From Carpediemonas membranifera BICM (taxonomy: Eukaryota; Protista; Fornicata): a stretch of DNA of 64,000 bases. The DNA lies in NCBI GenBank assembly GCA_019828565.1, contig JAHDYR010000066.1, positions 248,001-312,000 of the forward strand. Direction: 5' to 3'. The position numbers were made by a program, and so were the translations under genes. The notes below the pieces were generated by a model. It made no database searches, was not told the DNA's origin, and was given only the letters and a program-made list of their open reading frames with translations. Positions 5,392-61,024 of the stretch are shown piece after piece (within the stretch, counting starts at the first letter, position 1; each line of letters opens with the position of its first letter).

Positions 5392-5393
5392 TC

Positions 5394-36201: not shown

Positions 36202-36238
36202 TGTTTAGACTCAACAATTCTAATCCTGCGCAGCACAC
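36202..36238 (+). repeat. Upstream direct-repeat copy of the NAA20 promoter/5'UTR flanking Fanzor locus 1
   Basis: Matches 37566-37603; the 3' 22 nt (ATTCTAATCCTGCGCAGCACAC) are identical. Confidence 0.9.
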
Positions 36239-36602
36239 TACCTCCACTCACCCACTTCAGCCCTCGTCTGTACCATCGGGCTGTCGTGCTTTCAGTCGTC
36301 GGTCTGCACGAAAAGATGCGTCGTCTGTCGTCCATCGTCTGTGTCGAACGCTGCTGTCTTCTTTCGCGTCTGTGCTCGTCTGTTACGCGCTCATCTGTCG
36401 TCCATTGCTGGCGTCTGAAGCTCATGTCGTCGTCGTCATCTTCGTCTGTTGTGAGAGAGAGACACTAGTGGTGGAAAGCGGTTGTAGCTGGTAGTAAAGA
36501 CGCTTTGTGTTTTATGATGCTGGTTTCTTGTGTTTTGAGGGATGCTGCTAGCTGATGAACCCTGAAAAGAAATGATCGATGCAGGCAGCTCAATAGACTC
36601 CA

Positions 36603-37489
36603 ATGCCTTCCAAGATATACACGGTGAAGGTTTCCGTTAACAAGGCCATTGGCGAGATTAACGGTGGAGGCGATAACAACGCGCCGCGGCGAGGAAATCT
36701 TGAACCCAGCATGCGTTCTTTCACGCAGGCTAAGTACACATTCACTTGCCTGCTTGCGTGCGTCTCTGCATCTGCGCACGCGTTGACCCCACCGAGGATG
36801 GTCAACCTGTTGCCACCCCCTCTTTCCGCGTGAATATGAGCGCAGCATCGTTCAAAACGACAAGTCTAGAGGCTCTCAAACAGTCGATTAGGTTTGTCCA
36901 TGAGAACATCGTTCAGATCATCAACGAGGGGACGAGAAAGTGTTTCCGCCGTGCGACTTTTGCCAATCACTGTCTGCGCCAGAAGCACTTCGCCCGGGCT
37001 GGACGTCAACTCCTGGATGATCTCGGCGGGCGCCCCCCGGAGCCCATTCACCTCGAAGTCGCGTATGGGGCTGCACTGTTTGGTTCCGCCGGTACTCCCT
37101 CCTGTGCTCCGTACCGCCACTTTGCTCGAGCTCTTCCTGGCATCATGCTCCGGCACAACGTCGTCGTGACTGTCACGATGGTCTCGGAATTCCGCACTTC
37201 CATCGTGTGCCCATACTGCAAAGCACACTTCAGACGTGTGGTGCACACACACCGCACCATGCTCTGCCAGAATCCCGCGTGCGAGGGAGCTCCATGGCGC
37301 GTTGAACGGCTACGTCGGCATCCCGAGCAGAGAGACATACTTCTCAATCTCTCTCACCGAGATAAGAGCGCCAGCGAGAACATCCTTTGGTGCACCTACG
37401 ATGCAACTTCAGATCAGACTGAGCAATCTCCTTTCCACTACGACTACGACGAGGTGCTCTTCCTCGCTATCATTAACTTGCCAAGTTGA
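36603..37489 (+). pseudogene. Fanzor1 copy 1, internally deleted (lacks RuvC-I)
   Basis: SFKTTSL..FRRATF..RQK, VAYGAALF, VSEFRTSIVCPYC and HRDKSASENI; clear paralog of 58184-59818. The short upstream ORF 36603-36833 may be the N-terminus. Confidence 0.85.
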
Positions 37490-37603
37490 GCCAGCACGCG
37501 CTGCAGCGCACGATTGATAGAGTATGATGAACCACACTGCGATCCTGATGCTGCTTGGATCACTGTGTTTTGGACTCAAGTATTCTAATCCTGCGCAGCA
37601 CAC
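37468..37603 (+). ncRNA. Candidate omegaRNA (scaffold plus guide) of Fanzor copy 1
   Basis: Nucleotide homology to 59774-59845 in a different reading frame. Hairpins at 37498-37509 and 37533-37567, followed by host flank. Confidence 0.5.
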
Positions 37604-37621
37604 ACACCACGGCCATAAGCC

Positions 37622-38216
37622 ATGACGCACCTTCGGATGATGCACGTAGACGACATGTTCACCTTCAACAATGTCAATTTTGACAGCTATACTGAGACAG
37701 TTTGTCGCCTTGCGCGTTTCCTAATGCAGTATCGTGTATCCTTCTATCATAACTACATCGCTCGCTGGCCAGGTATGTGCCAGATCGCACAGGCGGTCAA
37801 TGGATCAATTCAGGGCTACAGTATGTTTTCAGTTCTTCCCTCTTAACCCAGTGATTGGCAAGTCCGAGGACCTGTCTGGGGGAGCTGATCTCCCCCACTC
37901 TCTCCGCGGCCACGTGTCCGCTGTCACGGTCGACCCCAGATACAGGAGGAATGGCGTGGCATCCCAGCTGATGGACAACTTCGAAGCGGTGTCCGAGAAG
38001 CAATACAAGGGCTACTTCATCGACCTCTTCGTACGAGCGTCAAATAAGACTGCTATCGAGTTCTATAAGCGGCGCGGGTACATTGTTTACCGGGAGGTGG
38101 CGAATTACTACGGCGACGAGGACGCGTACGACATGCGGAAGGCGACAGCGCTGGACAGGGAAAAGGAGACACTTACCCCCAAGGCAACGAGGATAGCGCC
38201 GAACGAGTACGATTAA
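37622..38216 (+). CDS. NAA20: NatB catalytic subunit (introns 37700-37729 and 37821-37851)
   Basis: DDMFTFNNVNFDSYTET|Y, GHVSAVTVDPRYRRNG, FIDLFVRASN and EDAYDMRK. Confidence 0.93.
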
Positions 38217-38481
38217 AGCAGTGCGGCACGGTATTGTGGAGCTGACGGCGTCGAGGGTGTTGGGCGGAGAGGCTTCTTGGGAATGGAGCAGTCCAAGGGA
38301 ACGAAAGTGTTGGCGGCGTGAAGCGTGTCTATGAGTGATTGGACTGCTCCATCAGTTATTCACAGTATCCCCGTGCTGTCCGGATTGGAGCATGGCACTT
38401 AAAACTGCACCACCGGTGCTCAGAGTAATCGGAGAAAATCCCGAGCGCAAGCAACGTATGCCTGGTAATAAGATCTCCAGC

Positions 38482-41400
38482 ATGCGTATATCACAGCTAA
38501 AGTTCCAGGACTTTAAGAGCTACAAGGGAGAGGTCGTCGTTCCCTTCGATGAGCATCTCTCGGCCATTATCGGTCCCAACGGCTGTGGTGTTTGTTTCCT
38601 ATCCACCTCTAACATAGAAGAGCAATATCATGGACGGTATCTGCTTTGTTCTTGGCCTTCCCAAGAGCTACATGCGTGTTGCCACCATCGACAAGCTCAT
38701 TTGCTGGGACGCCGAGGACGAGAAGCGTGCTCTCGTTGAGATCACCTTCATCGACACGAAGCATCCCAGTCGCGAGCTCCGCTACTCCCGTTCTGTCCAG
38801 GTCGACGGCCGTACGCCCCGCAGCACGTTCCGTATCGGCAACAAGATTGTCTCTGCTGAGGAATACGAATCTTCCCTCGTCTCTATCGGTGTCACCGTCA
38901 CCCAGCCGACGTCGTTCCTCATCCAGCAGGGCAGCGTCATGCGCATTGCCGAGCAAGCATCTGTCGACCTCACAGCGCTGATCGAAGAGCTCTCAGGGTC
39001 TGGCAAGTTCCGCAAAGCGTTCATTGAGCGCCGCATAGCCCTCGAGGAGGCCAAGACTCGTCAGTTCAACGAGTCAGTGAACAAGCGGACCATGCAGGGC
39101 CAGGCCAAGGCTCTCAAGCACCAGGTTAACGAGCTCAAGCGCTACAATGACCTCAAGGAGAAGCGCAAGGACTGCCAAGAGGAGGCCATGATGCTCCGCA
39201 TCGGCCAGTCCCGCCACAGGCTCCAAGAGGCGACCGCCACGCGAGACAAAGCCAAGGCCGACATCGCCGAATGTGTCGCTCTCATCCAGAGCGCCGAGAA
39301 GACCCGCACCGCTGTCTTCAGAGAGGCCCAGGGCCTGAACAAGGCGATGATCGAGACGAAGGCCGAGCTTGCGGCGCTCGACTCGGCCCAGCCGGACACC
39401 GATGACCTTGAGGCGCGTGTGACCTTCCTGCGGCAGCGGGGCAAGGAGTACAAGGGCGCCCTCAAGGAGCTGGCTGAGCAGCTCAAGAAGGAGCAGGCCG
39501 ACAACGAGCGGGACGCGGGGCTACTCGACGAGACTGACGCGCACCTTAAGGCGCTGGAGAGCACCCCCGCCAGCATTCTCGACGGGGAGCTCGCAGACGA
39601 GTATGCCGAGCTGAAGAAGGAGTTCGAGCACAAGCACGCGGACCTCGTCGCCAAGGCCAACAAGGAGGCGGCCGTCGACGACCAACTCGAGGCCCTACTC
39701 ACGAGCGCCAAGGAACGGGTAGAGGAGACGGAGGCGTCGATACGGCGGCACCAGGAGCAGATTGGGGCCACTGAGACGAAGAGGGCCGGGCTACAGCAGG
39801 GTCTGTCCCGGATGGGGCACAGAGTGACGCACGCCAGGAACGAGGTCGACGCCCTGCAGGAGAGACTCAACAGCTTCGAGACGGAGAAGGCCGAGATCCA
39901 GCGGGAGCTGCGGACCGTCGACGAGCAGCTCGGGTCCAGCGCCGCGTCCCGTCAGATGAACAGGGCCGCCGAGAGGGCCCGCCAGACCGTAACCGAGCTC
40001 CGCAGTAGCGTGTTGGGCGTGTACGGGACTGTGTCGGACCTCATCCGGCCCAAGAAGGACAGGGAGACCGCTGCCGTTGTCGTCGGACTCGGCCGGCATG
40101 TGGACTCCATCGTCGTCGACACGCTGGAGACCGCCAACAAGTGCATGGAGCTGCTCAGACTCAAGACGGGCGGCCGCCGCAAGTTCCTGCCTCTGGAGAC
40201 GATCAGGGCCAAGGCAATCGACCCCGCTATTGCCGACCGGGTCAAGCAGGGCCGCGGCCGTAAGATGCTGTACGACGCGGTGACGTTTGAGGAGAACTTC
40301 AAGACGATCGCCCAATTCGTGTGCCAGAACACGGTGCTGGCCCCCACCATCGAGGACGCCCAGGCCGTCGCATGGCCCAACCAGGGCAAGCGGGTACGGA
40401 CAGTCGCCATGACCAAGCGGTGCGAGCTCTTCCTGAAGTCAGGCACGATCTCGACGAGCGGGAACCTGGCCGACCGCACCGCCAAATACAGCGAGGCCGC
40501 CATGGGCGAGCTGAGGGCCAAGAGAGACGCCCTCAACAGCCGTCTGGCCGACCACAGCGTCCGCCGCTACCACGAGATTAGCGAGGAGCTCCAGGGCGCC
40601 CAGGGCAGCTGTCAGGCCGCCCTCCGCAAGCAGGAGGCCGCCACCAACGAGATAGACCAGGCGCAGGCGGTCATCGAGGGCCACGAGTCGAGCTGCGAGA
40701 AGATCAGGCGCAGTCTCGAGGCGCTGGAGTCCGAGCGGGACAGCCGGCAGGCCGAGTACGAGGCGCACCACGACGTGCACTGCGAGACGCTGGAGAGGTT
40801 GAACAAGGAGGCAGACCGCTTCTACAAGGCCTTCATCAAACGTGTGCAGAAGGCCGGGCTCAAGGTCCAGAACGTCCGCGACCTCGAGGGCGACACGAAG
40901 AGCGCCCGCAGACGCCAGAAGGAGGAGCGGATGAGGCTGGTCGAGAGGCGGGAGCGGCTCAAGACGGCCATGGACATCAGGGCGAAGAAGCACACGGAGG
41001 TGCACGTCGCCAAGGCCGAGGAGCGGGTGAAGACGAACGAGGCCCAGCTGGCCGACAGCGAAAAGGCCAGCAAGGCGGCGTACGGCAAGTCCAAGACCGC
41101 CAAGAAGCAGCGGGAGGCACTCGAGGCGAAGCTGGGGGAGCTGACGGACAAGAAGGACGACCTGGTCGCCCGGAAGAAGGCCTCGACGGACGCTGTGGGG
41201 GAGAACAAGCGGCGACGGGACCGGGCGGAGAGCCTGCTGTCGTCCGCGGCCCAGCGTATCGCGGACCACAAGCGGACACTGACGGGGCACTTCAACACAC
41301 TCAGGATGCAGAACCTCGAGCTGACGGGCTACCGGTCCCAGGGCAAGCGGGCGAGGGCCCACGCCACCCAGACGTTCGGGCTGACGGCGTTTGTGTCCGA

Positions 41401-42286
41401 CACGCAGCAGACGGACGAGGACGTGTACGATGACATCGAAGCCTTCTTCGACACACTTAACTTCAAGGCGTTCAAGGACATCATCAGCAGCGACGCCAAG
41501 GTCGACGAGGAGCTCGCCCGTCTCAGAGGCGCCGTCAAGGAGACCCAGGCCGAGCTCGACGCGATGGTCCCGAACCACAACGTCGAAGGCGAGTTTGACC
41601 ACATCACGGAGCGGCTAGGGGAACACGAGGCACAGCTCAACGAGGTCGCGGCCGCCGTGGAGGAGGCCGAGCGCCTCTTCCAGGTTTGCAAGAAGCAGCG
41701 CACCGACCTCTTCGTCGAGACGGCCAACGACCTGTCTGCTGCCATCCAGCAGACGTATGCCGTCCTCACGGGCGAGGCGGGCAGCGTGCAGGGTAAGGCA
41801 GAGATCCAGCTCGAGTCCGATGATCCGTTCGTGAGCGAGGACGCCGCTTGCCAGCTGCGGGTGATGCCGCCCCGCAAGCGGTACATCTCGATGTCCGAGC
41901 TATCCGGCGGCGAGAAGACCATGGCTGCCCTCGCCCTCATCTTCGCCATGCGGATGGTAAGACCCGCGCCCTTCTTCGTCATGGACGAGGTCGACGCAGC
42001 CCTCGACCAGACCAACGTCACCCGCCTTGTCGACTTCATCACGGGGCTGCGGCACGAGACCCAGGTGCTCCTGGTCTCCCTCAAGACCGAGGTTTACGAG
42101 ACCGCCCAGCGCCTCGTAGGGGTCACCCGGCCGCCCAACATGAGCACGCAGGTGTACGTGCTCGACAACGACACCGGCTACGACGGCAGGGAGACCGACA
42201 CCGAGCTCGGGTCCGTGGCGCAGTCGAATCTTGACTCCATGGACGCCAGCGCCATCGAGGGCGGGTCCCTCCTCCACGGCTATTAA
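38482..42286 (+). CDS. SMC1: Cohesin subunit SMC1 (intron 38590-38617)
   Basis: FKSY, spliced Walker A GPNGCG|KSN, hinge, LSGGEKTMAALAL and PAPFFVMDEVDAALD. Confidence 0.92.
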
Positions 42287-42401
42287 TGGTAAATGTTGAA
42301 CGATGGCTGGATTGGGGGCTAGACGGCTCTTGGGCAGCTCAGCATTCAATCAGCCTCCGTTCTTGATGCGTGCACTTTAAAGTCATCGACGACGTTGCCG
42401 A

Positions 42402-45400
42402 ATGCTCATTGTTGATAGCATTCAGAAGCCCACATGGGTTCAAAAGGCAATTAGTGGCTCATTTTCTGCTCCGAATCAGATAGAGTTTGTTCTGTGTCGC
42501 AACAACACGCTGGAACTGTACAGTTTTGACGCTGAGCTCGACGAGCTTACTCTCACAAGCCGCACGCCGGTATATTCGGTTATTCGTGATATTGTGAGCT
42601 ATAATCTTCCCGAGACCGAGACTGATGTGATCTCCTTGGGCACAGACAGCGGCCGCTTCACAGTTTATGCCTACGACGCCGCTGCCGGTGAGTTCAAATG
42701 CCGGGCAAGCCACCCATACGGCCGCACAGGGTGCCGCCGCACTGTACCCGGCCAGTTCATCGCGGCCCAGCCATCCGGCGACATGGTGATGGTGGCGGCA
42801 GTTGAGGAGGCCAAGGTCTTCTACCACGTGTCTGCGGACGAGCAGTACACCCTGTCCGCAGTCCAGGCGTCCAACAGACCCCGCACCCTGACGTACGACG
42901 TCGCAGCTCTCGAGACGGCGCCGGGACAGCCCGCCCTCTTCGCCGCGATCGAGGCCACGTATGAGGACCCCGCGAAGAGGCTCGTCATATACAGCACGAG
43001 CCCAGGCCAGCAGGCCCCCGAGGTGCACATGCGGATGGATCCCCTGCCCCCGACGGCGCACCGCATCGTGCCCCTGCCAGCCACGGACGTCGTGGGGGCT
43101 TGTCTGGTCTGCTGCGAGGACGAGGTGCTCTACCTCGAGGAGTACAGTGCGGATCCCGTCCAATGCTTTATCCCCAGGAGGGATGTGTTCAAGCCCGCCA
43201 GCCCCGCCTTCGAGTCCCAGTCGACGGGGACCATCATCACGGGCGCCGTCGGACAGAAGATGAGGGCCACGGGCGAGGCCTTCATGCTCATCCAGACCGA
43301 GCACGGCGACGTCTTCCGGGTGGCGGTGGGTCCGTCCCTCACGGTGTCGTTCGTCCGGACCCTGCCGGTCGCCGCGTCCATGGCCTTCAACAGGGGCAGG
43401 CTGCTCCTGGCCGCCGAGAGTGGGCCGCACGGCATGTTCCTGGTGCAACCGGGCTCCCAGGCGGACGACAGCGCCGCCCAGCCGGACGTCCGCTGTTCAT
43501 CGGGCGAGCCCTGCCCCACTATCAGCTGGGCCGGCCCGAAGACGGTGCCTCAGTTCTACCTCGACCCCATCGACGTCACCCTGCCCAGCCTAGGCCCACT
43601 CATCAGGGCCGTACCGCTGGAGAGCAGCGGGTCGTCCGTGCTGATGCAGCTCGTCGGGCACCGCCACCACTCCCGCCTGGTCGTGTCGAAGCGGGGGGTG
43701 GAGTCGACGTCGGAGGTGTCCATCGCGATTGAGGGCATGTCGCCGACCGAGCGGATTGCGGACATCTGGGCTGTATCGACGAGCGCCCCCACGACAGCAG
43801 CGGAGGACGACATCGACGACCTCGTCGTCCTGTCGGTGTCGAAGGCCGTGGGCGACAGTCTGGTCTATCGCACCATATTCTACCGCCTGGTTTTCGTTGA
43901 GGACGAGGACGAGAACGTCTCCCTGTCCTTCTCACACGCCGACGCCGGCTGGGTGGAGGAGATGGGCTTGTCGACCGCCCACACCGTCCTGGTCCACTCG
44001 TACCGCACCGAGGGCCACACGTTCATCGCCCAGGTCACCGAGGCCGCCGTGTGCACCCTCGACATCGCCCCCAACCCCGAGGACGAGGAGGCCCCCCTCA
44101 TCACCAGGGGCTGCCTCACGACGGCCGCCGTGGCGGGGGGCACCGCGATCACCCAGGCCGCTGGACACGCGGGTAGGGTGACCCTCGTCTTTGGGGACAC
44201 TGTGCTGGCGTCGGTGGCCATGGAGAACGGCTTCAGCATCGTCCAGACCGCCCTGCCCGTGCAGATTAGCACGATCACGTGCGTATCTCTCGATTCGGCT
44301 GGTCTTATTATCGGATCTTTTGGATCTGCCGAGATCTTTGCTGTCCACTCATCCGGCACGCTCCGGCACATCTGCCGACTCCGGACTCCCGGCAGAGTCG
44401 ACTCAGTCATCCGGCACGGGTCCTCCCTCTTCGTGGCGACGAGCGCTCAGGTCGCCAGTGTCAGGCAGTTTATGATCGAGGCCGACGGGTCTGCCTCTGA
44501 ACAGTCGACCGCCCTCGTTGCCGCCCGCCGCCCCTTCCAGCTGAAGCGGCTGGGATCTGCCGTGCTGGCCGGGTCAGACCGGCTGTACCACGTCGGCATG
44601 GGCGGCGGGCTGCTGGACGTCCGCGAGGTCATCTGCCCCGTGGCCCACTGCGTTGGGGCCGTCAACATCGAGGGCAAGCCCATGATGCTGCGCGGGTCGG
44701 CTGGCCTCACACTGCTCTCGCTGAAGACGCACGACTATTTCGTCCCCCTCGCGGAGCTGCCCGTCAACCTGACCCCCAGGTTCGCCGTGCCCCTCGGCCA
44801 GCCCGTCGAGACCCCTGACAAGAGCACCATCATCACCATGGCCGTGGTGGAGGCTGATCAACGGGTCGCCCCCACGGCCGACAAGGACCTCGCCGAGCAC
44901 GGTTACCGGCCGGCGGTCGACGGCGTCGGGCTGACGAGGCTGAGACTGATCAGGGTCGGCATCAGATTCGGCATATCTGCGACAATTGAGACGATCAGCA
45001 TCGTGGACCTCACTGACATGGGCATGGCGGTGACTGCTGCCACCGTCGTCGGCCAGCACCTCGTCCTCGCGGCATCAAGGGCGACAGGCCCGTGGCTGGG
45101 CCGTAACGGCAGGGAAAACGCCGCCAAGGCCACCGGCGAGCTGATGCTGTTCGATTTCAACGGCCGGAAGCTGTCGATGGTCGAGACGGCGGCACCGCCC
45201 CGCTCGCTGGCGCCCTTCAGCGAGGGCGTCCTCGTCTCCGTCGGGCACTCCCTGGTCCATTACCAGGTGCGGGGCGGCCGGCTGCTCCGAGCAGCAGTGT
45301 CGCCGCCCCTGCCCGGCCCCCTGGGCACCGTGCTAGCTGACGGGGACGTCCGGGTCTGGGCCGCGACGGGGCGGGGGTGGTGTGTCCTGTCGTTCGACTC

Positions 45401-45983: not shown

Positions 45984-46118
45984 GCAGCGAGGTGGTGTTA
46001 ATGATATGTAAATGACCGGGTGTCGCAACGACTGTGGGTGTCGTTACGTGGACAGCGAACTAGGCTAATCAAACTTCGATTTGATCGATTCGCAGGATAA
46101 GGATCGACAGCTGAGAAA

Positions 46119-46349
46119 ATGGTCCGTGTGGAGGTCAAGAGCAAGTATATCTGCAGGAGTATGTCGTTATTCCGTTGTTATTGTTTATATAGGCTGTGGG
46201 CGCGAGACCGAGCTCGTTATCGAAGCTAACCAGCCTACTTCGATCCAATGCCCCGTTTGCCGCGGTAAGATCCTCTACAAGAAGCGTACTACCGAGCGTT
46301 TGTTCATATTTGTTCAAATCACACAGCTCTCGTCTTTGATTGCCGCTGA
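46119..46349 (+). CDS. RPB12: RNA polymerase I/II/III subunit RPABC4 (introns 46159-46192 and 46298-46326)
   Basis: Spliced product YICRSCG..IQCPVCRGKILYKKRTTEPLVFDCR. Confidence 0.9.
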
Positions 46350-46787
46350 TTGCGATCTTCATGACCCGGATAAATTATTGCATGCGCAGAATGGCGCTAT
46401 GATTGCCTGCGTTGAGGGAGATAAGGTTGTGTCCGCAGGAGCATCATCGGCTGGCAAGGAGAGAGGCTTTGTTCCGACTTTGCGATGATCGCAGCTTCAA
46501 CCCTGACCCAAGGATGGACTTCTCGAATGTCAGTCAAGGCATATACCCGCTGGACCCCGCCGAGGACACTGAGCTATGCCCGAACAATCGGCTAAATCTT
46601 TTTCTCTTTACATTCCCTCACCCTTGTTAACCACCCGAGCAACAGGCTAACTGACCACATCTACATACAACGCAAAGAAGCATGTAGGCCGGCACGTCCG
46701 ACTAATTCAAGTCCACAGCCAGAGCGACACCACACCATCGGCTAAATCCGGAGCCGCCAAAGCTGCAACAACAGCAATCGAACGAAA

Positions 46788-50509: not shown

Positions 50510-50759
50510 GAGTGCTGTGACATAAACTTTTGTTTCTAAGTTTTTAAATGTTAGGCTGGGAGGGAGTTTGGAGAGAGGTTTAGACAATGCGACCTTGGAG
50601 AGCCGGGGCATACAGACTGGGATGCGGCGCTGCTGCGGGCCAGACGCCATCTTAACATAGCCTCCCGATTTTTTCCTCCTCATTTTTTATCCTGCAATTG
50701 TGTCCAGATCTTGACGAGATCTGTTGGGATCTTGGCCCCATGCTCTGACCCAAACGTAT

Positions 50760-52567
<1,808 letters not shown>

Positions 52568-52629
52568 ACGATAATAGCGGAATTATTAATTAAGGTCAGC
52601 GGGCAAGTTTACTTCGGCGGTCGACTGGA

Positions 52630-53883
52630 TCAGATCTTCTTATGCTGGGCGATCTTGTAGAGCTTGTAGATGCCCGCTAGACAGAGGAACACGATGCCGC
52701 CCGCCGGGGTGGTTGCAAGGATCACGATGAAGTAGCCGTTGAAGAAGACGGCGCAGACGAACGCCGTCACGCCTGCCGTGACAGCCGCGGCGATGCATGC
52801 GAAGAGACAGAGGAACGCCACGCTGCGGGCCATGACTTGGATCGAGGCCACCTTCTTTTTGACATTGCGGACAGTGTCATCCCGCCCCTTGACGACGAGG
52901 ATCGTCAGGGCGGTGTGGTACACAGCCGAGACGAGGAACACGGTGAGGCCGATGCCCACGACAGCGAGGGCCGCGGACCCAAACAGGAGGTATACGTTCC
53001 AGTGGTTCAACGCGAAGCCGACGAGCAGGAATATAGCGACACCCGCGCCGAATCCGACGCCTGCTGACCATGCAAGGGTGCCGACGCTGTCCTTGTGCGC
53101 TGCAGGGACGCCGTAGGTGGCGTATATGATCGAGATGACCTGCGAGCCAACCCCGATGACGATGGCGCCGGGGATACAGATGCAGGCTAAAGCGATAGCG
53201 ATGTTGATGACGCGGAGGTTGAATATGATGCCGAGGGGCACAACGCCGATGAGGCTGATTACGGTAAGCACCACGCCGACGATGCCGATGCGGAAGACCG
53301 TGTTGATCAGCGTCGTCACCGGTAGGGCAGGCGTTTCCTTGGTCAGCATGAGCTTCCGTCGCCACGTCCCGGTGAGTATGGCGAGGAGCAGCCCGTCTCC
53401 CGTTGGCGGGGTCGAGGGAATGGTCACAACACGCACGGGCTCAGGCTTGGGCGGGACGACAGTGGCGCTGGGCTTGTCGGCGCCGTAGTCCGGCGCTGTG
53501 TGATTGAAGTGCTTCTGATCTTCATCGGATGAGGATGACGAGGAGTCTCGCCTGCAGTTCTTGCCTCTGCTGTGCGTGTCCCTAGCAGGTCCTGGCGGCT
53601 CCATGGCCGGCTCGGGGGCGAACGTAGGGGCCGACGGGGCCGTGTATGGGTTGGGACCGTACGGTGCTGCAGCGGGGCCAGGCGCGTACGATTGGCCGTA
53701 TGGATTGGAAGGCTCTGAGCCATACTGGGCGTATGTATAGTCTGTGGGGGCCATTCCACTGTCGCCTGCATTGCCGTAGGGATTATCGGGATAGCGATAC
53801 GCCTGTCCTGGCTGTCCCTGATTGTTTCCTCCCACAACATTGCCGTATGGACTGCTGCCGTATTGTGAATAGAACTCGCCCAT
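52630..53883 (-). CDS. Multi-pass membrane protein with Pro/Tyr/Gln-rich N-terminus
   Basis: Probable start MGEFYSQY at 53883; about six hydrophobic segments. Confidence 0.7.
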   Translation of the reverse strand: MGEFYSQYGSSPYGNVVGGNNQGQPGQAYRYPDNPYGNAGDSGMAPTDYTYAQYGSEPSNPYGQSYAPGPAAAPYGPNPYTAPSAPTFAPEPAMEPPGPARDTHSRGKNCRRDSSSSSSDEDQKHFNHTAPDYGADKPSATVVPPKPEPVRVVTIPSTPPTGDGLLLAILTGTWRRKLMLTKETPALPVTTLINTVFRIGIVGVVLTVISLIGVVPLGIIFNLRVINIAIALACICIPGAIVIGVGSQVISIIYATYGVPAAHKDSVGTLAWSAGVGFGAGVAIFLLVGFALNHWNVYLLFGSAALAVVGIGLTVFLVSAVYHTALTILVVKGRDDTVRNVKKKVASIQVMARSVAFLCLFACIAAAVTAGVTAFVCAVFFNGYFIVILATTPAGGIVFLCLAGIYKLYKIAQHKKI

Positions 53884-54295
53884 CGATTTCCCGAACTTGT
53901 GGCAACTTCTTCCTTGAAGACCCGATCTGACTCGAGGATTGTATCTCGTCGGGCAACCGGAGTACCCCACAGGGCACGAAGGAGCGGCAGCAGGGTGCCT
54001 ATGCGGCCAGCATGCTGTCGGGCTGAGGGATCCAAGGATTCCGGAGTCTGGTATGGCTGACCCCTGCCCTGCGGAAGGGGCAGACACAAGCTCTCCACAT
54101 GATGCTATCCAGAGGCTACGCACTACGTGTTATGTCAGGAGGTGGAATGATTGGTGGTGGGTTGACGCTGAGAATGAAGATCAATAACGGCATACAATCG
54201 TATGTCGCCACTCTGCAATCGATTCAGTGCGCCACTGGCGACAGTACAGCCCGGGTTCCAGACACCGCAGGTTTTGACAAGTGAAACCGACACTT

Positions 54296-55836
54296 ATGCT
54301 CAACATCCGCCAGGAGCTTGCTGCTGACCAGTTTGATGCTCCATCATTTGTAGATAAGCTTAGGTCTCAAGGAAATTTAGTTCTTTTGCGTGCTAATGTT
54401 CGTTTTATCCTGCTACACCTCTCACATAGGTAGAAACTATCAAGGACCAGGCCAACGACGAGCTTATTACTGCAATACACGAGCAATGCTCTGCGGTGAT
54501 TCACCCCATCACCAAGATTAACCCCAGAGACATCACCACCGTTCGGGAGAAGCTTGAGGCACTGACCGAGCCATTCACAGAGTACGAGCGTCTCATGGGG
54601 ACCCACAGGGCGAAGATAGACGCCACCAAGGCAGCAATTCACCACTCTAACGACGAGATCAAGCGAGCGATGTTTGCCCAGGCCCTCTTCCGCAGTGTCC
54701 ACACCCTCGTCGCCTCCCTGGATGCCCCCGAACCGGTGGACATCGACGCCGTGACCAGCGAATACTGCAAGCTCGCCAAGACTGTTGACCAGGCCACCCC
54801 GCGCCAGGGACACCCCCTGAGGGCAGCACTGCGGGACGGCAAGGGGACGCTGGTCGACAGGATCCTGGGCCAGACCATCGTGAAGGCCGACGTGTCGGAT
54901 GAGGACGCCGCTAGGGCCATACAGGCAGTGGTCCGGCTTGGGGCGGACGACCGGCTGTTGTCGACGCTGACCCAGGAGATCTCCGCGAGGATGGGCGATG
55001 CAGACACGATGCAGGATGCCATCAAGGCCATCACCCCGGTACTAGCGTCGCCCTGGTTCACTACCGTGGCCGCAGCCAGTGTGCGTCTGGCCACGACGGC
55101 CGACCCCGACATGTCTATCCAGTTCCACATGTCACACGCGATGCTAGCAGCCATGAAGGCGGTCAAGCGGGACAGTGCGCTGGTAACCGTGTCCACCGAG
55201 TCTGAGATGAAGCAATTCGAGCGGGACTACATGTCCGCCCACGCCTACCTCCAGACGCTGCATGGCATGTTCGCCCGTGCGGCCGGGACCGAGGGGGAGA
55301 TCGAGACATTCGTGCAATTCGCGATAGAGGACCGCCGGATGCATGACGCCTTCATGTCGTGTCTTTTGATCCCGAGGCACAGAGTCGACGCCTACTACAA
55401 GCAGAAGCAGCTCGCCGCCATCAGCGCATTCGAGAAGAAGCTCGAGATGAACGGCATCAAACCGACCAACAACACATTTATCTTTGACCTGAAGACCGAG
55501 GGTCCCCGCCTCCTCCAAGAGCAGCTCGAGCGCGTCTTCTCGGACCACATCACACCCGACCCGATGCGGGGCACGGCGCCGCAGCTTATGGCGCACTATG
55601 TGTCACTGCTGTTCGCTGTCGTAGATCAGTTTAGTGCATGGGCGCAGCGGCTGAAGGGGAGAGAGCCGGACGCCAAGCTGACCCTGGTCACCGACGACGT
55701 CCAGACGCTGTGCACTGCCGAGGGCGTTCTCAGTGTCGTCAAGGGCCGCATCGCGGAAGCATGGGGTGAGGAGTCGGCACGAAAGGTCGTTGAGGCGGCA
55801 AGGTCGAGGATGCTCAAGGGCGTCTCATTTTATTGA
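54296..55836 (+). CDS. COG2-like vesicle-tethering subunit (intron 54398-54429)
   Basis: Spliced N-terminus DQFDAPSFV..L..LR..ELITAI resembles the COG2/Vps51 N-terminus; helical protein. Confidence 0.55.
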
Positions 55837-56030
55837 CTTGACTGCCTGAGAAATGCATCTTGCGGCTGTATTAAATTCCATAGCAGACGGTGGGTTGCAT
55901 ATTGCCGTCGACTTCGCAATCTATGATCTATAGTTGAGCCCATGCAACCGTCAGACTGGCTTGGTCTCGTCATCTTTTTTTGTGCAAGTGATCTTTTTTC
56001 ATGAAAAAAAGAGAGACGATAGCAATTTCC

Positions 56031-56367
56031 ATGTCTGAGCTCGCCTGTGTGTACGCTGCTCTCGCTCTTGCTGACGCCGGTGTTGAGATCACCGCCGACA
56101 AGCTTGTCGCCATGACCAAGGCCGCTAACGTCGAGGTTCAGCCTGTTTGTTCACCATTGTTCAATTCTCATCCAGATCTGGGCTTCCCTCTTCGCCAAGT
56201 TCCTTGAGGGCAAGGACGTTATGGACATGCTCTCCAACGTTGGCTCTGGTGCCGCTGCTGCCCCCGCCGCCGCTGGCGCTGCCGCCGCTTCTGAGGAGGC
56301 CGCTGCTGAGGAGGAGGCCGAGGAGTCCGAGAGCGACTCCGACATGGGCTTCGACCTTTTCGGCTAA
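56031..56367 (+). CDS. RPLP1: 60S acidic ribosomal protein P1 (intron 56145-56175)
   Basis: [16 protein letters not shown]|[20 protein letters not shown]. Confidence 0.96.
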
Positions 56368-56580
56368 GGATTATCCTCAGTGTAAACCCAAAAATCATTG
56401 ATGACGCTGTCGTCTTCGTTCATGAGTTGATTTATAACTGATTAACGGAATAGGAATGTCTTGACGCCGGCCCAGCAAGCTTTAGCTCACGGCATGCATA
56501 GTGGAGCTACTACCAGCGACACCACCCGCCACTGCAGGGAGCCGAGGGCAAAAGTGCTCATCGACGTAGCGGAGGTGAAT

Positions 56581-57675
56581 ATGGTGAAGAAGCCCTTTAT
56601 CGATAAGAAGAGCGCTGTTCACTTCAAGCTGATGAATACGTCGTATCACGGCGAGAACGTCATTGCTGGCGAGCAGGCGAATTACTGGGAAGAAGTGAAT
56701 CCGCCAAACATGGCCCCCGAGGCCGCTGCTGCTCGCAAGGTCCAGAAGATCGACCTCAATGAGAGCGATGACGACGATCCATTCCGCGAGGTCGACGACG
56801 AGGGCATCCCCAAGGACCTCGATGTCGAGGAAGGCTCCGACGTTGAGATCGACGACGAGCTGCGCGAGGCTATGCGTGCCCGCATGGAAGAGTACGGCAT
56901 GGAGAGCGAGGATGCGTACGACGAGGAGACTTGCGATGACGACAGCGAGGAGGGCTTCGACTTTGGCGACGAGACCGAGTCCGACGATGAGGAGTACGAC
57001 TTCGACTTCCCCAAGGACCGCAACGCCAAGGTCGACATGGCCGAGCTGGGGCCGGCAGACCGGGGAGACTACGGCCAGTTCTTCGACGGGCTGTCTGACG
57101 ATGAGGTCGACGATGAAGAGGGCCTCGGCGACGTGCACGACCTTGAAGACGAGATCATGGCGGAGATGGCGAACATGGACGTGCGGCACGACGTGAAGCA
57201 GATCGCGGAGATGATGAGGCAGACGCCCGAGGACATCGAGAAGACACGGCTAATCGTCGCGCAGAAGGAAAAGAAGAAGAAGATCGCCATCGCGACGTCC
57301 AACATCGTCCGCAACGTCATGGACCGCGAGTTCGACCCCAGCAAGGAGCACAAGCCCGCGACCATCGGCCCCGCCATCCGCATCAGCAAGGGCGGCTTCC
57401 CCATCGGTGTGCTGCGCCGCAAGGGACAGGAGAGCGACGACGAGTACGATTCCGATGAGTCTGACGGAGCGCCCAAGGTCGACCTCGGCGTTGCCCGCAA
57501 CAAGGAGGAGACGGCCGAGGAGAAGAAAGCTCGGAAGGCGGCCATCAAGAAGGCCAAGGCGGAGGTCCGGGAGGGGAAGAAGACGGCTGCGAAGGAGCTC
57601 AAGAAGAAGCTGAGGAAGAAGGAGACGAGCCGCATGGGCAACGTGCTCCAGCCGCAGGGCCGCAAGCTGTACTAG
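56581..57675 (+). CDS. LTV1: 40S biogenesis factor LTV1
   Basis: KKPFIDKKSAVHFKL, G.PIGVL and R.KEETAEEKKARKAAIK..R..KK. Confidence 0.85.
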   Translation: MVKKPFIDKKSAVHFKLMNTSYHGENVIAGEQANYWEEVNPPNMAPEAAAARKVQKIDLNESDDDDPFREVDDEGIPKDLDVEEGSDVEIDDELREAMRARMEEYGMESEDAYDEETCDDDSEEGFDFGDETESDDEEYDFDFPKDRNAKVDMAELGPADRGDYGQFFDGLSDDEVDDEEGLGDVHDLEDEIMAEMANMDVRHDVKQIAEMMRQTPEDIEKTRLIVAQKEKKKKIAIATSNIVRNVMDREFDPSKEHKPATIGPAIRISKGGFPIGVLRRKGQESDDEYDSDESDGAPKVDLGVARNKEETAEEKKARKAAIKKAKAEVREGKKTAAKELKKKLRKKETSRMGNVLQPQGRKLY

Positions 57676-57990
57676 GGCCTCGGACTCTGTAAATACGCGG
57701 ATTAGTTCGCAGAGCGGGGCGGGGGGCTGCTATGGGATGGGGGGCGGGCCTTCTCGGTCCCGGGCCCGGGTCTGGGTTTGAGCAGATGAGTCTCTCTGAA
57801 GTTCCAAGCCCAGCAACACGGATGATTTAGATCAATCAGCACCTCAACTACTTCTACCCCAACGGCAGTGTCTCCACAACAACGGACTCGCAGTCACAGA
57901 TCCGCTTCGGCAGCTGAGCACCACCCCAACTGTGTCGGAGTGGCTGTGGCCACCGCACTTTAAGACACATCTCACCGTGCTATTGAAGGG

Positions 57991-58018
57991 TCGAACAATG
58001 TGTTTACACTGCGCAACA
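57991..58018 (+). repeat. Upstream direct-repeat copy of the eIF2B-beta promoter/5'UTR flanking Fanzor locus 2
   Basis: 26/28 identity to 59871-59898. Confidence 0.9.
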
Positions 58019-58183
58019 CTGCCCTATCTCCCTCCTACTCACGTCTTAAGTCGGTAGGGAGATCGTCTTCTCCAGGGCTTCCACAAAGCGTCTTCTTCGT
58101 GGACGTCAGCACAGCTGCAAACATCACAATCGCTCACACGTCGTCTCATTGTCTTCTATTCCACATTAAATTCACTTCTACAC

Positions 58184-59818
58184 TTGTATAGGCTGGTAAT
58201 GGTGTTCATCGTCGCATGCTCATGGCTCATCGTATCGTCGTATGGAGTGAGTCCCAGTCTCCGGGCGTGGTTCACCCGATACGCCAACTCTGTGAAGCTG
58301 TGGCTCGCCCGCACGGTGAAGACGTACCGTGACAGGCTACAGGGCAGCCTCGCCCGACTCGAAGAGGCTCTCGCAGGTGTTGGCTCTCCGGCCTTCTTCC
58401 AGCAGGAGTTGGCCGGCGTTCACGCCATCCTCGGCAGGGTCAACCCTGAGATCCTCGCGTGTCTCCCCTCGCTGTTCTGGGCGGCTCACATGGGTGAGAA
58501 CGACGGGCTCCCAGTCTCCGAGGCTGCCCCACGCATTCTCTCTTGCGTCTGGGCAATTGCAGACGGAGTGGAGAAGTTGAGTGGCCTCATCAGCCACTTC
58601 AACGGGGAGTACTCGATGTCGCTCCGCCAGCCTCGCCTCGTGCCGATCGTGCCCATGGCCCCCGTCCGACCGGGCTTCATGGCCTACCGTGAAACGATGG
58701 GCCTACTGAACGAGAACTTCTGTCATCGTGTGGGAATTAATCCCACACTCCCACACGCCACCAATCCGTTGACAGAAGAGCAGAAAAGACGCTACCGGGA
58801 CAACCCCAGGTCAATGGGCCGTCTGCTCAGCCTGAGCACCGATGGGGTCTGTGTGGCGGTGACGGTTAAGCGAGGCGGCCGCTATCGGCCACAACATGAT
58901 GCGAGCATGCCTGTTCGAAAGCGAGCGAGAGGGCGGGAGAAAGAGCGCCCCCGACTCGGAGAAAATAATGCCGATGCTCCGCCCGCGCCGGATCCTGATG
59001 CCCACCTCATGGGGTTCGACCCGGGCGCGAGGTCCATCGGAGGGTATTACATCAAGCACCCCGATGGCACCAGCTCCGGCGTCCTCCCAAAGTGCGGATA
59101 CACTAAGACGCCAAGTTTCGGCTTTGATATGACGGCCGCGTCGTTCAAGAGCACAGGACTAGTGAGTATCAACAACTCTATTAGGTTTGTGCTGGACAAC
59201 GCGAACGACATTTTCGAGGCTGGAATGCGTAAGTCTTTCCGCCGAGTGCGCTTTGCGAACCACATCCTTCGCCAGAAGCACTTCGCCCGCTGCGGCCAAC
59301 AGTTGGCTCGGGAGTTCGGTCGCCACCATCCCATCGCCACCCCCATTCGCCTGAAAGTCTTCTACGGGAGCTCGGGATTCACCACGCCTGCTGGTATGTT
59401 CATTCCTTGCGCGCCATATCGAAAGTTCGCGAGAGAGATAGTTCCCCATCTCAAGAGGTATAACATTGTCGTCGATCTTAACATGGTTAACGAGGACCGC
59501 ACCACCGTCGTCTGCCCTCACTGCCACGCCCCCTACAAGCGAGTTCGTCCGCGTGATGACCAGCACGTTCACCCACATCGTGTGATGCTCTGCGAAAATC
59601 CACAGTGCCGTGGTGCTCAGTGGCGCGCAACAGTTCCTGATGCTCTGAATGTTGATCATCGGGACAAGAGTGCTGCAGAGAACATCCTGTGGCGTTCTCT
59701 TGCCACGGAAGATGAGCTCGGTCACTCTCCGTTCAGTCGCACATTGATCCCACGTCTTCAAACATCATTCCAGTATCATCAATTGGCTAACCGCCACCAT
59801 TCGTCTGCTGACGGATGA
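58184..59818 (+). CDS. Fanzor1 (TnpB-family RNA-guided endonuclease), RuvC triad intact; first ATG at 58199
   Basis: STDGVCV, RuvC-I GFDPG, SFKST..FRRVRF..RQK, RuvC-II VNEDRTT followed by CPHC, LCENPQC, RuvC-III HRDKSAAENI. Confidence 0.9.
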   Translation: MYRLVMVFIVACSWLIVSSYGVSPSLRAWFTRYANSVKLWLARTVKTYRDRLQGSLARLEEALAGVGSPAFFQQELAGVHAILGRVNPEILACLPSLFWAAHMGENDGLPVSEAAPRILSCVWAIADGVEKLSGLISHFNGEYSMSLRQPRLVPIVPMAPVRPGFMAYRETMGLLNENFCHRVGINPTLPHATNPLTEEQKRRYRDNPRSMGRLLSLSTDGVCVAVTVKRGGRYRPQHDASMPVRKRARGREKERPRLGENNADAPPAPDPDAHLMGFDPGARSIGGYYIKHPDGTSSGVLPKCGYTKTPSFGFDMTAASFKSTGLVSINNSIRFVLDNANDIFEAGMRKSFRRVRFANHILRQKHFARCGQQLAREFGRHHPIATPIRLKVFYGSSGFTTPAGMFIPCAPYRKFAREIVPHLKRYNIVVDLNMVNEDRTTVVCPHCHAPYKRVRPRDDQHVHPHRVMLCENPQCRGAQWRATVPDALNVDHRDKSAAENILWRSLATEDELGHSPFSRTLIPRLQTSFQYHQLANRHHSSADG

Positions 59819-59898
59819 TATTGTACAGTTTGGCACTTTGATCGTTCCTTTCAGGCCCTGTCTGGGAGGTTCGAAAAATGTGTTTATACTGCGCAACA
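59774..59898 (+). ncRNA. Candidate omegaRNA (scaffold plus guide) of Fanzor copy 2
   Basis: Homologous to 37468-37546. Hairpins at 59798-59817 and 59847-59869 (10 bp including three G.U), followed by host flank. Confidence 0.55.
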
Positions 59899-59905
59899 GG
59901 CGAAG

Positions 59906-61024
59906 ATGTCGTCCGAGTGGTGCTTCGATGAGCGGACGATGAAGGACTTTGACGAGCAATGCATCAAAGCCATAGATAAGATCCGTCAACGGCGAGTTAC
60001 CGACACAGACGAGATCGCTGTCAGCACAGCGCGTTTCTTCAAGGAAATCATCTATGAGTCTCAGGGCGATGATATTGAGGCTCTTATCAACACTATTAGG
60101 CACTATGGGCACATGCTGCAACAGGCTAACCCCTCTGAGTACGTTATTAAGAACGTCATGTTCCGCGTTCTCTTCCTCATCCGCGACCAGTACCTTGCAG
60201 CCGTCCGCGGCACCACAAACGACGTTCAGTACTTCGCGCCGTCCCTGGACACGCTGATCAAGAACGCCGGGCAGCACACGGATGTCCCGTTCAATATTCC
60301 CGTGATCAACATCAAGAAGAGCGTAGCCGACCTCATCGAGCGGCCCAACTCAACCACCAACGCGGACGAGGAGAGTCTTGTCGACAGCATTCAGCGCTCC
60401 ATCGAGGAGATCTCCGCCTCGGCCCCCAAGCACATCCACCCCAGCGAAGTTGTCCTTGTGCACGGCTACTCCAAGGTCACGATCGAGTTCCTCCTGGCTG
60501 CTGCGGACGAGATGCAGGGCGAGTCGTTCGAGGTGATCGTTGTTGAGCGGGCACCGAGCATGGACGGCCATCAGACGGCAAGCGAGCTGGCGGACTGCGA
60601 CGGCATCACAGTCACCCTCATCCCAGACTCCGCCGTGCTCGCGTGCATGGCCAAGGTCGATATCGTGCTGCTCGAGCCCCGCGCGATCCTTGGGGACGGC
60701 ACACTTATGGTGCCCTCGGGCGGGCAGAACATCGCCATCGCCGCCCGGCGCTACCACGTCCCCGTCCTGGCCCTGGCCGGCGTCCATCGCCTGTCACCCC
60801 TGCATGTGTGCCGGGATGCCCCCGTCCGGCAGGGCGCGGCGGACACCCTGGCCGACGCGTCAACGGCCATCCTGGAGGATACGATCGTAGTGAGCCCCGA
60901 GCACGACATGATCCTGCCGTACCGGTACAAGATCCTGATCACGGACGACGGAGACCATGGCGTATCCTATGTGTACCGGTTGCTGACCGAGCTGTACCAC
61001 CACGTCGACTTCAGCCCGGTGTGA
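59906..61024 (+). CDS. EIF2B2: Translation initiation factor eIF2B beta subunit
   Basis: ANPSEYVIKNVMFRVL.LIR, HIHPSEVVL.HGYS, V.ERAP..DG and IPDSAV.A.M.KV. Confidence 0.88.
   Translation: MSSEWCFDERTMKDFDEQCIKAIDKIRQRRVTDTDEIAVSTARFFKEIIYESQGDDIEALINTIRHYGHMLQQANPSEYVIKNVMFRVLFLIRDQYLAAVRGTTNDVQYFAPSLDTLIKNAGQHTDVPFNIPVINIKKSVADLIERPNSTTNADEESLVDSIQRSIEEISASAPKHIHPSEVVLVHGYSKVTIEFLLAAADEMQGESFEVIVVERAPSMDGHQTASELADCDGITVTLIPDSAVLACMAKVDIVLLEPRAILGDGTLMVPSGGQNIAIAARRYHVPVLALAGVHRLSPLHVCRDAPVRQGAADTLADASTAILEDTIVVSPEHDMILPYRYKILITDDGDHGVSYVYRLLTELYHHVDFSPV

Follow-up and report, generated by a model that had tools for sequence, protein, structure and literature searches.

Two copies of a repetitive element carrying a Fanzor1-type gene lie in a 64,000-nucleotide window of Carpediemonas membranifera DNA, one upstream of a host GNAT (NAA20-like) gene and the other upstream of the eIF2B-beta gene (Table 1). 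An earlier sequence-only reading had described each locus as bracketed by direct repeats, and these pairs exist: 37/38 nucleotides at 36202-36238 and 37566-37603, and 28 nucleotides (26/28 identical) at 57991-58018 and 59871-59898. Their shared ending, TGCGCA[AG]CA, occurs in the window at these four places only. The distances it gave to the two ATGs, 18 and 7 nucleotides, were correct, and no transposase or poly(A) was found inside either locus, as it had claimed. Both loci stand at revised bounds, the start of locus 1 lying about 150 nucleotides further left than had been supposed. Locus 1 is 98% identical to a full-length copy (L008), barring a 1029-nucleotide deletion; locus 2 lacks about 350 nucleotides of N-terminal coding sequence (about 120 amino acids), so that its 544-amino acid ORF is a truncated form of a protein of about 640 amino acids. 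Both window copies are deletion derivatives.

Table 1. Features of the two loci and of the gypsy elements used for comparison (window coordinates)
Feature	Position	Strand	Remarks
Promoter motif, locus 1 left flank	36028-36038	+	Offset -23 from element end; 8.9 bits
5' TSD copy, locus 1	36046-36050	+	CACAC, 5 bp
Locus 1 element	36051-37602	+	Subfamily C; TG...CA termini; internal deletion; ends set from 5 copies
Left LTR-like repeat, locus 1	36051-36237	+	Unique part 36051-36203; part shared with right repeat 36204-36237, holding promoter-motif copy
Captured C-terminal end of an ORF	36094-36201	-	In left repeat of locus 1; stop 36094-36096
Polypurine tract, locus 1	36238-36257	-	Adjoins left repeat; first 8 nt as PPT junction of L012 80-nt-LTR gypsy
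Fanzor N-terminal remnant, locus 1	36603-36811	+	MPSKIYTVK...; tblastn and translation
Fanzor C-terminal remnant, locus 1	36812-37489	+	RuvC-II E, zinc finger, RuvC-III D
Candidate omegaRNA hairpin, locus 1	37502-37602	+	3' arm is right repeat; z about -1.5; no compensatory pairs
Right LTR-like repeat, locus 1	37564-37602	+	39 nt; promoter-motif copy
3' TSD copy, locus 1	37603-37607	+	CACAC, 5 bp
Host GNAT (NAA20-like) ATG	37622		Downstream of locus 1
LTR fragment, 80-nt-LTR gypsy family	57796-57837	+	42 nt; 95% identity to L012 LTR; 138 nt upstream of locus 2
Promoter motif, locus 2 left flank	57952-57962	+	Offset -24, shared by all 7 subfamily A junctions
Locus 2 element	57976-59898	+	Subfamily A; N-terminal deletion; no TSD found flanking it; first base C instead of T
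Left LTR-like repeat, locus 2	57976-58018	+	43 nt
Polypurine tract, locus 2	58019-58036	-	First 6 nt as PPT junctions of both gypsy elements in window
Fanzor1-type ORF, locus 2	58184-59818	+	Annotated start 58199, 539 aa; TDG near 58838, RuvC-I D near 59018, RuvC-II E near 59492, RuvC-III D near 59663
Candidate omegaRNA, locus 2	59820-59898	+	About 80-nt hairpin after stop codon; 3' arm is right repeat
Right LTR-like repeat, locus 2	59859-59898	+	Promoter-motif copy
eIF2B-beta ATG	59906		Downstream of locus 2
Interrupted Ty3/gypsy element	13903-30725	-	124-nt LTRs; comparator
Autonomous Ty3/gypsy element	17485-22287	-	98-nt LTRs; 5-bp TSD; intact 1335-aa gag-pol; comparator, candidate helper type

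At least 112 annotated copies are present in Carpediemonas, in three subfamilies (A, B and C). The true termini are TG...CA with an exact 5-bp TSD in 12 of 16 complete copies; no TSD consensus was found across copies, and a canonical TAM is thus not evident. Short inverted ends, which the earlier reading had not seen, do exist (2-6 bp: TG...CA, which in subfamily B extends to a perfect 6-bp TGAAGT/ACTTCA). Left repeats measure 43, 65 and 187 nucleotides in A, B and C, versus 39, 48 and 39 on the right, consistently across copies; the two sides have only 25-34 nucleotides in common, and the consistent difference lies in the outer-left part. A solo repeat with a 5-bp TSD is found at L004:15200-15264. 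The right ends of L002a, L002b and L011 consist of a 6-16-nucleotide terminal piece joined to shifted positions, that of L002b carrying the copy's own left-repeat allele; in L003 and L009, too, the right repeat contains left-type alleles. Internal deletions are frequent, deleted copies keep both termini, and no transposase or other mobilising enzyme was found in cis in the 19 loci read. The Fanzor gene may face either way relative to the host gene.

The left repeat of subfamily C has captured the tail of an opposite-strand ORF, which ends about 45 nucleotides from the left terminus and is longer in some gene models. Its retained length differs among copies, giving at least six variants of the left junction with a single fixed inner breakpoint. 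Compared with a paralogous piece (L011:3502-3759), the tail has eight synonymous and one non-synonymous codon differences. No match to known transposases was obtained, and the left ends of subfamilies A and B have no such ORF.

Full-length gene models of the encoded protein range from 621 to 642 amino acids, in keeping with the enlarged size (about 600 or more) of Fanzor1 proteins. Published Fanzor criteria (PMC10711439) are a DPG motif and, 120-160 amino acids beyond it, an alternative RuvC-II glutamate that precedes the first CxxC by six residues. In our alignment the TDG motif (WED domain) is invariant, RuvC-I reads MGFDPG in nearly all copies and in all three subfamilies, and E-x6-CxxC is found in all, at a spacing from DPG of 152-158 in A and C and of 164, just over the published limit, in B. 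The second zinc pair is Cx4C, followed by an Asp (HRDK) after an 18-26-amino acid insertion, the TnpB criterion being CxxC with the Asp 4-8 residues later; hhalign puts the HRDK Asp on the TnpB RuvC-III motif, in a colinear alignment with the TnpB/Cas12f zinc finger and RuvC-III. The catalytic triad is invariant across subfamilies that are about 50% identical, and dN/dS values of about 0.16-0.23 between subfamilies and 0.5-0.7 within them indicate purifying selection. At locus 1 the RuvC-I DPG aspartate is deleted, so that its product would be catalytically incomplete. Searches of 1.8 and 5.8 billion proteins returned no significant match outside Carpediemonas; the weak matches were to Pfam Cas12f1-like_TNB (E=0.016), Cas12f (E=0.098) and, by hhalign, IS609 TnpB (P about 0.006). 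Foldseek placed PpFz at rank 2 (E=0.23), using a model with a pLDDT of 37, and the AlphaFold models are of low confidence. Judged by its sequence, the protein carries the published Fanzor1 fingerprints (TDG, DPG, E-x6-CxxC), in agreement with the earlier assignment, and RNA-guided cleavage is a prediction. These proteins appear to form a divergent Fanzor lineage that is invisible to standard homology searches. A very improbable alternative is that the protein derives from TnpB as some other divergent RuvC/zinc-finger branch, or that it is the enzyme which mobilises the element; the empty searches and low-confidence models would suit it, but the fingerprints at their expected spacing, the colinear alignment and a 3' hairpin at the usual place argue otherwise.

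That hairpin, a candidate omegaRNA, is strongest in subfamily A (z from -4.3 to -5.9; 0/200 shuffles) and weaker in B and C (z from -1.5 to -2.1). No compensatory pairs were seen among five subfamily A copies, which are near-identical and too similar to show any, and no Rfam match was found.

The element ends look Ty3/gypsy-derived. A polypurine tract (PPT) adjoins the left repeat in all three subfamilies, with 12-13 of 15 positions being pyrimidines on the Fanzor strand (background 2.3% / 0.6%). Its leading nucleotides match PPT junctions of resident gypsies over 6 nucleotides in A (chance 0.0014) and 8 in C (chance 0.0002), and the terminal hexamers of B are the same as those of the L012 80-nt-LTR gypsy. 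The Fanzor gene is antisense to this retroelement polarity. The five resident gypsy families have LTRs of 80-127 nucleotides, TSDs of 4-5 bp and a 12-14-bp palindromic PBS next to the 5' LTR. None has an LTR equal to a left repeat, and at the PBS position the Fanzor elements have short imperfect palindromes only, which double as the hairpin apex. These LTR-retroelement hallmarks were missing from the sequence-only reading.

The link between insertion and promoters is real. A weight matrix for an 11-bp, bidirectional host promoter motif was learned from 83 element-free upstream regions. The motif is present in the left flank of 16 of 16 insertions and absent from right flanks, at offsets of -24 in A (7/7), -23 or -22 in C (5/5) and -20, reversed, in B (4/4), with its end 9-13 nucleotides from the element. 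Left flanks score a mean of 9.0 bits versus 1.7 on the right (p=7e-7; 0 of 5000 promoter-window resamples reach it), the motif window and matrix variant having been picked after the flanks had been seen. The exact offsets are kept even by copies whose Fanzor or hairpin is not intact. At seven autonomous gypsy insertions, which sit in TE islands, the motif is absent from the flanks (scores of 2.7 bits or less). Ten of 15 insertion sites are within 50 nucleotides of a host ATG; essential host genes as special targets, as the earlier reading had it, are not supported. The element repeats themselves match the motif strongly (10-12 bits), and the right repeat bears a flipped copy 2-6 nucleotides from the displaced position (shift -5 in A, -2 in C, +6 in B). 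Insertion is indeed keyed to a core-promoter-like motif, but that motif lies in the flank; similarly, a promoter motif is brought back near its original distance from the downstream host sequence, but the copy is the element's own.

We favour, with modest confidence, a non-autonomous gypsy-derived element that is integrated in trans and tethered to promoters in the manner of Tf1, with Fanzor as a homing passenger. The family, with its three old subfamilies, would descend from Carpediemonas Ty3/gypsy retrotransposons, each element combining miniature unequal LTR-like repeats with the antisense Fanzor1-type gene and its candidate omegaRNA. The ends are TG...CA with a 5-bp TSD and a gypsy-type PPT by the left repeat, no mobilising enzyme was found in cis, and deleted copies still move. 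A retro-sense RNA would be reverse-transcribed and integrated in trans by gypsy reverse transcriptase and integrase, both ends being rebuilt every cycle through short template jumps; the joined right ends, the left-type alleles in right repeats and the left-junction variants are indirect evidence for this. The left end lies 20-24 nucleotides from the start of the motif, with an offset and orientation specific to the subfamily. A host factor that binds the motif, which is present in the element repeats as well, may tether the integration complex in the way known for Sap1 and Tf1. The flipped motif copy in the right repeat would spare the downstream host gene, and the left copy could drive Fanzor. 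The host is haploid, probably sexual and without NHEJ (PMC8516963); Fanzor, guided by the hairpin and right flank, would cut empty alleles after mating and lead to conversion (non-restorative homing). Several points weigh against this explanation: the repeats are unequal, whereas canonical LTR reverse transcription gives identical LTRs; there is no matching helper LTR, autonomous gypsy flanks lack the motif and the PBS palindrome is degenerate; what is unique to the left repeat in subfamily C comes from a coding gene and is no typical U5; and the TSDs offer no consensus for a TAM, while neither sequence nor structure searches gave the protein a significant match among known Fanzors.

A less likely alternative is a DNA transposon of the cut-and-paste type (Ginger-like, or a KolobokP-like composite) that ends in TG...CA. 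A DDE transposase would act on it in trans, perhaps the product of the opposite-strand ORF that left its tail in subfamily C; Fanzor homing would be restorative, and the many internal deletions would arise from abortive gap repair in the NHEJ-less host. The fixed left/right asymmetry would be natural for movement at the DNA level, as would deletions that leave both termini, and the ORF tail near the left end is under purifying selection. Every Fanzor carrier that has been classified is a DNA transposon (PMC13565253), and KolobokP is a precedent for such transposons with direct repeats (PMC9587614). However, the PPT junctions are identical to those of resident gypsies, the terminal repeats are direct with inverted ends of only 2-6 bp, alleles have been transferred from left to right repeat, and at least six left-end variants share a single inner breakpoint; the tail, moreover, matches no known transposase and has no counterpart in the left ends of A and B.

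It is decidedly unlikely that Fanzor itself selects the site, reading the motif as an extended TAM and nicking with a 5-nucleotide stagger or recruiting an integrase in trans. This would fit the strict one-sidedness, with the motif always on the TAM side (16/16), the offsets and orientation that follow the three Fanzor subfamilies, the invariant triad and the autonomous gypsies' lack of such targeting. Against it, the motif end is too distant from the element for a canonical adjacent TAM, target-motif variants mismatch the subfamily's repeat, making RNA base-pairing unlikely, and copies lacking an intact Fanzor or hairpin would need trans action; repeat geometry per subfamily or helper integrases account for the offsets equally well. 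A shade less probable is a retroelement that recruited Fanzor as a targeting module, its RNP recognising the promoter motif and directing or making a staggered cut for gypsy-made cDNA. If true, CRISPR-associated transposons would have a eukaryotic counterpart built on a retrotransposon, one that also restores the promoter it splits. The original proposal was that insertion duplicates 28-38 bp of host core promoter as a long TSD, so that element and host gene have a copy each; in its favour are the strong motif match of the repeats and their ends 7-19 nucleotides from ATGs. It is refuted. The other copies, which that reading had asked to be checked, do have flanking repeats, but alignments of the window with copies from unrelated contigs run through both repeats, and the repeat is the same throughout a subfamily, so these are element ends; the real host duplication is a separate 5-bp TSD outside them, and the left flank retains the original motif.

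The non-autonomous, gypsy-derived element that we favour differs from Fanzor1 in non-autonomous eukaryotic transposons, such as Spu-1 of Spizellomyces (PMC3627910, PMC10432273), in its direct rather than inverted terminal repeats, its 5-bp TSD, which varies where theirs is a fixed TA/TAM, its gypsy-type PPT and its targeting to a promoter motif. It resembles TRIM and non-autonomous Ty3-gypsy elements in its short TG...CA direct repeats, 5-bp TSD, PPT by one repeat, solo repeats and lack of its own reverse transcriptase or integrase; because the two repeats are not identical, we do not class it as a canonical TRIM. Like Tf1 of fission yeast (Sap1-directed; PMC7175516), it inserts at Pol II promoters beside a motif also found in its LTR; unlike Tf1, it is non-autonomous and strictly one-sided, its offsets are subfamily-specific, its likely helpers do not share the targeting and its host factor is postulated. 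KolobokP (PMC9587614) similarly has an internal nuclease gene between direct repeats with their own short inverted ends, and solo repeats, but its repeats are about 450 or 660 bp and its gene products are a DDE transposase and a His-Me nuclease, whereas the Carpediemonas elements have repeats of 39-187 bp, no transposase and a PPT.

If the favoured origin is correct, this family of 100+ copies, with gypsy-derived ends and a Fanzor subject to purifying selection, would be the first exception to the view that retrotransposons never carry Fanzors, and a haploid eukaryote that can be cultured and lacks NHEJ would allow non-restorative homing to be tested. Whatever the origin, the elements insert with nucleotide precision on one side of a core-promoter motif and supply a replacement for it, which constitutes targeted, self-compensating integration and brings to light a previously unremarked promoter element of Carpediemonas.

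The 544-aa ORF of locus 2 has paralogs in the C. membranifera genome only, and the adjoining eIF2B-beta protein maps to C. membranifera contig JAHDYR010000066.1. The proteins retrieved include at least 112 family members in three subfamilies (50 in C, 41 in A and 21 in B) with ~45-55% identity between them; locus 1 belongs to subfamily C and locus 2 to subfamily A. The catalytic triad and zinc finger are kept in 35 of the 112, and the N-terminus in addition in three of these 35. Family members make up ~1% of the gene models of the genome; most are recorded as 'hypothetical protein', and some are misnamed cytosine deaminase, Smc or transposase (protein records P0014 and P0019). Twelve Carpediemonas loci of ~21 kb provided a sample of 19 element copies or fragments, the two window loci included.

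Re-reading of the window confirmed the repeats at both loci, their shared ending and their distances to the host ATGs. However, the repeats are not a duplicated host promoter, as the sequence-only reading had proposed: because DNA homology among copies on different contigs continues across both repeats, they are the termini of the element, and those of locus 1 and locus 2 are unlike solely because the loci represent different subfamilies. An exact 5-bp target site duplication (TSD) lies outside TG...CA ends in 12 of the 16 copies having both ends, with the first T substituted in three copies, and one solo repeat, flanked by a 5-bp TSD of its own, was also found. The left and right repeats of a copy have only 25-34 nt in common, the outer-left part being consistently different. 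At locus 1, the element is bounded by a 5-bp TSD, its left end lying at 36051, and 1029 nt have been deleted, including the RuvC-I aspartate. The neighboring gene is spliced, its main ORF piece gave a GNAT match, and we tentatively call it NAA20-like on this match and on its N-terminus. Locus 2 lacks a TSD, but its left junction lies at the usual distance from the target motif, so that a later change on the right side is likely. About 350 nt coding for the N-terminus are also missing, and two further copies at other sites share this deletion; truncated forms therefore still move. At locus L004, a subfamily A element and 800 nt of its left flank form a 3-kb inverted duplication (99.6%) that ends 4 nt before the right end.

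Three kinds of search found no homologs of the family protein outside Carpediemonas, and none were present in viral or metagenome contigs, plasmids, NCBIfam or PHROGs. Matches in databases were weak: Cas12f1-like_TNB of Pfam at E=0.016, Cas12f at E=0.098, and an hhalign alignment to IS609 TnpB that is colinear but has P~0.006. Foldseek searches with two low-confidence AlphaFold2 models (mean pLDDT 37 and 41) gave no significant match, although a Fanzor1 structure ranked second. The published fingerprints, namely DPG, the TDG motif of Fanzor1 and a glutamate that precedes CxxC by six residues (PMC10711439), occur in all three subfamilies, with deviations in the second zinc pair and the RuvC-III spacing. 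In the RuvC region, dN/dS is ~0.16-0.23 between subfamilies, against 0.5-0.7 within them. Downstream of the stop codon in subfamily A, ~80 nt form a hairpin (z -4.3 to -5.9) in which the right repeat supplies the 3' arm, and folding at this position is weaker in B and C; no covariation was apparent among the copies compared, which are too similar to reveal any. Rfam and tRNA scans were empty, as was a sigma-70 scan, which is irrelevant here. We take the protein to be of a divergent Fanzor1 type and the hairpin to be a candidate omegaRNA.

In 83 upstream regions with no adjacent element, unseeded EM repeatedly gave variants of one motif, approximately TGYGCAGTTTA. Windows in which it scored at least 8 bits made up 37% of those upstream, 15% of those downstream and 0% of the coding ones, with both orientations equally frequent (15:16). 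In the upstream regions of host genes across the twelve loci, this bidirectional 11-bp motif lies mostly 20-60 nt before ATGs, and it is apparently a general core-promoter element of Carpediemonas. All 16 insertions have the motif at a fixed offset in the left flank: -24 for the seven of A, -23 or -22 for the five of C, and -20, with the motif reversed, for the four of B. Left flanks average 9.0 bits versus 1.7 in right-flank mirror windows (p=7e-7), and the left-flank mean was reached by none of 5000 resamplings of promoter windows, though such p-values are optimistic because the flanks had already been seen when the PWM variant and scan window were selected; the exact offsets are stronger evidence for targeting. 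A host ATG lies within 50 nt of 10 of 15 insertion sites, the distance being 36-44 nt for a facing left end and 7-32 nt for a facing right end. The motif also occurs within the element repeats (8-12 bits), there always opposite in orientation to the flank motif, and the copy in the right repeat falls -5, -2 or +6 nt from the former host-motif position relative to downstream sequence. The earlier intuition of promoter targeting and replacement holds. At locus L003, a C element sits in a B right repeat, at the standard offset from the motif there. The motif is absent from seven flanks of autonomous gypsy elements.

The termini also resemble those of the resident Ty3/gypsy elements, of which the window and the sampled loci contain five families; these have LTRs of 80-127 nt, TSDs of 4-5 bp and a palindrome in the position of the primer binding site (PBS). 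On the strand opposite the Fanzor, a polypurine tract (PPT) adjoins the left repeat in each subfamily (purines at 12-13 of 15 positions; background 2.3% and 0.6%). In subfamily A, the first 6 nt of this tract are those found at the PPT junction in both window gypsies (chance 0.0014), and in C the first 8 nt are those at the junction in the 80-nt-LTR gypsy of locus L012 (chance 0.0002). Subfamily B has no such junction match, but each of its two repeats begins and ends with the terminal hexamers of the L012 element. The gypsy palindromes, 12-14 bp long, overlap the LTR end in all five families, with no tRNA-type PBS there, which suggests tRNA-independent priming; similar palindromic sites occur in fungal GalEa copia elements (PMC5445492).

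Junctions suggest rebuilding of the ends at every insertion. In three subfamily A copies, a 6-16-nt terminal piece is joined to a shifted position; in one of them this piece bears the copy's own left-repeat allele, and another of the copies encloses 260 nt of captured sequence. Left-type alleles occur in the right repeats of two C copies, and C left repeats have at least six lengths with a single fixed inner breakpoint. Two copies appear one-ended, with 8-9-bp duplications and filler DNA. An A element at locus L002 carries at its left end ~250 nt copied from a promoter that lies 8 kb off; a 9-bp duplication flanks the whole unit, and the junction has the standard offset of -24 from the motif. 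In C, what is unique to the left repeat is the tail of an opposite-strand ORF, which differs from a paralog by eight synonymous changes to one non-synonymous; searches with it gave no identification. The tail and 3' UTR of this repeated gene were also captured in one A right end. The tail could be a captured mRNA end or a transposase-gene remnant, and the repeated gene is a candidate for a helper or a transposase gene.

Read most economically, the element would be a non-autonomous gypsy derivative, copied through an RNA intermediate and integrated in trans by a helper. Against it, canonical LTR reverse transcription would homogenise the outer-left parts, which differ here, and the LTRs of all five gypsy families compared differ from the left repeats, leaving no matching helper among them. 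Given the unequal repeats, the missing helper and the ORF tail in C, we stop short of classing the element as a canonical TRIM and retain a DNA-transposon route as a rival, which we consider rather unlikely. For the gypsy derivative, a host factor binding the motif both in the target and in the repeat would tether the element to promoters, which would account for motif-less helpers inserting elsewhere; such a tether resembles Sap1 with Tf1 (PMC7175516). That the Fanzor itself reads the motif is improbable in our estimate, but would fit the strict one-sidedness of the motif and its subfamily-specific offsets. The replacement motif would plausibly spare the host gene. Because retroelements, to our knowledge, do not excise, the Fanzor would bring its benefit by converting empty alleles after mating. 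In this scheme, the ends, TSD, PPT, motif offsets and deletions are observations, to which the RNA intermediate, helper, tether, promoter function and homing are added by inference. The host lacks NHEJ and is haploid and probably sexual (PMC8516963).

Several other schemes were rejected. A long promoter TSD conflicts with repeats common to several loci, and LINE-type target-primed insertion with precise ends, a fixed TSD length and the absence of a tail. RNA base-pairing to the motif was discarded, as target variants do not track the subfamily repeat sequence, and a TAM within the TSD, as the TSDs have no consensus. IS607, Helitron and Crypton-type movement was rejected because YR/SR elements leave no fixed 5-bp TSD (PMC3627910). 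Replitron movement was set aside likewise, as Replitrons are not known to leave one. The retroelement-type ends make the family more unusual than first proposed; among the matches listed, no paper mentioned Carpediemonas together with Fanzor or TnpB.

The first 33,000 nt of the window (1-33000) are a dense island of transposable elements. Inverted-repeat-bounded segments of the window contain unclassified ORFs (629 aa and 348 aa) and a SET-domain ORF, and might represent either an endogenous viral element or a DNA transposon of large size.

Coordinates of elements and repeats in the window and in further Carpediemonas loci (L002-L012)
Feature	Position	Remarks
Nested gypsy elements	window 13903-30725, enclosing 17485-22287	TE island
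LINE-like insert with endonuclease domain	window about 24170-28900	TE island
Further gypsy fragment	window 10710-13533	TE island
DIRS-like element with tyrosine recombinase	window 30770-32965	TE island
Inverted-repeat-bounded segments	window 294-3030, 2965-7989, 10606-10641	arms 36-54 nt and 33 nt
SET-domain ORF	window 6799-7329	
Four ~25-32-nt palindromic repeats	window 5217-5391	clustered
Gypsy PBS-position palindromes	window 22178-22191, 30591-30602; L010:9442-9455; L012:17876-17889	
Repeated-gene tail / 3' UTR pieces	L011:3502-3759; L008:12115-12158; window 36094-36201	
Promoter copy and its source	L002:9527-9774; L002:17766-17998	
Inverted duplication with A element	L004:8643-11668 and 17318-20349	
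~1-kb element	L010:1990-2966	110-nt inverted repeats
636-nt inverted repeat pair	L006:4628-5263 and 15375-16010	near-identical; adjoining promoter motifs
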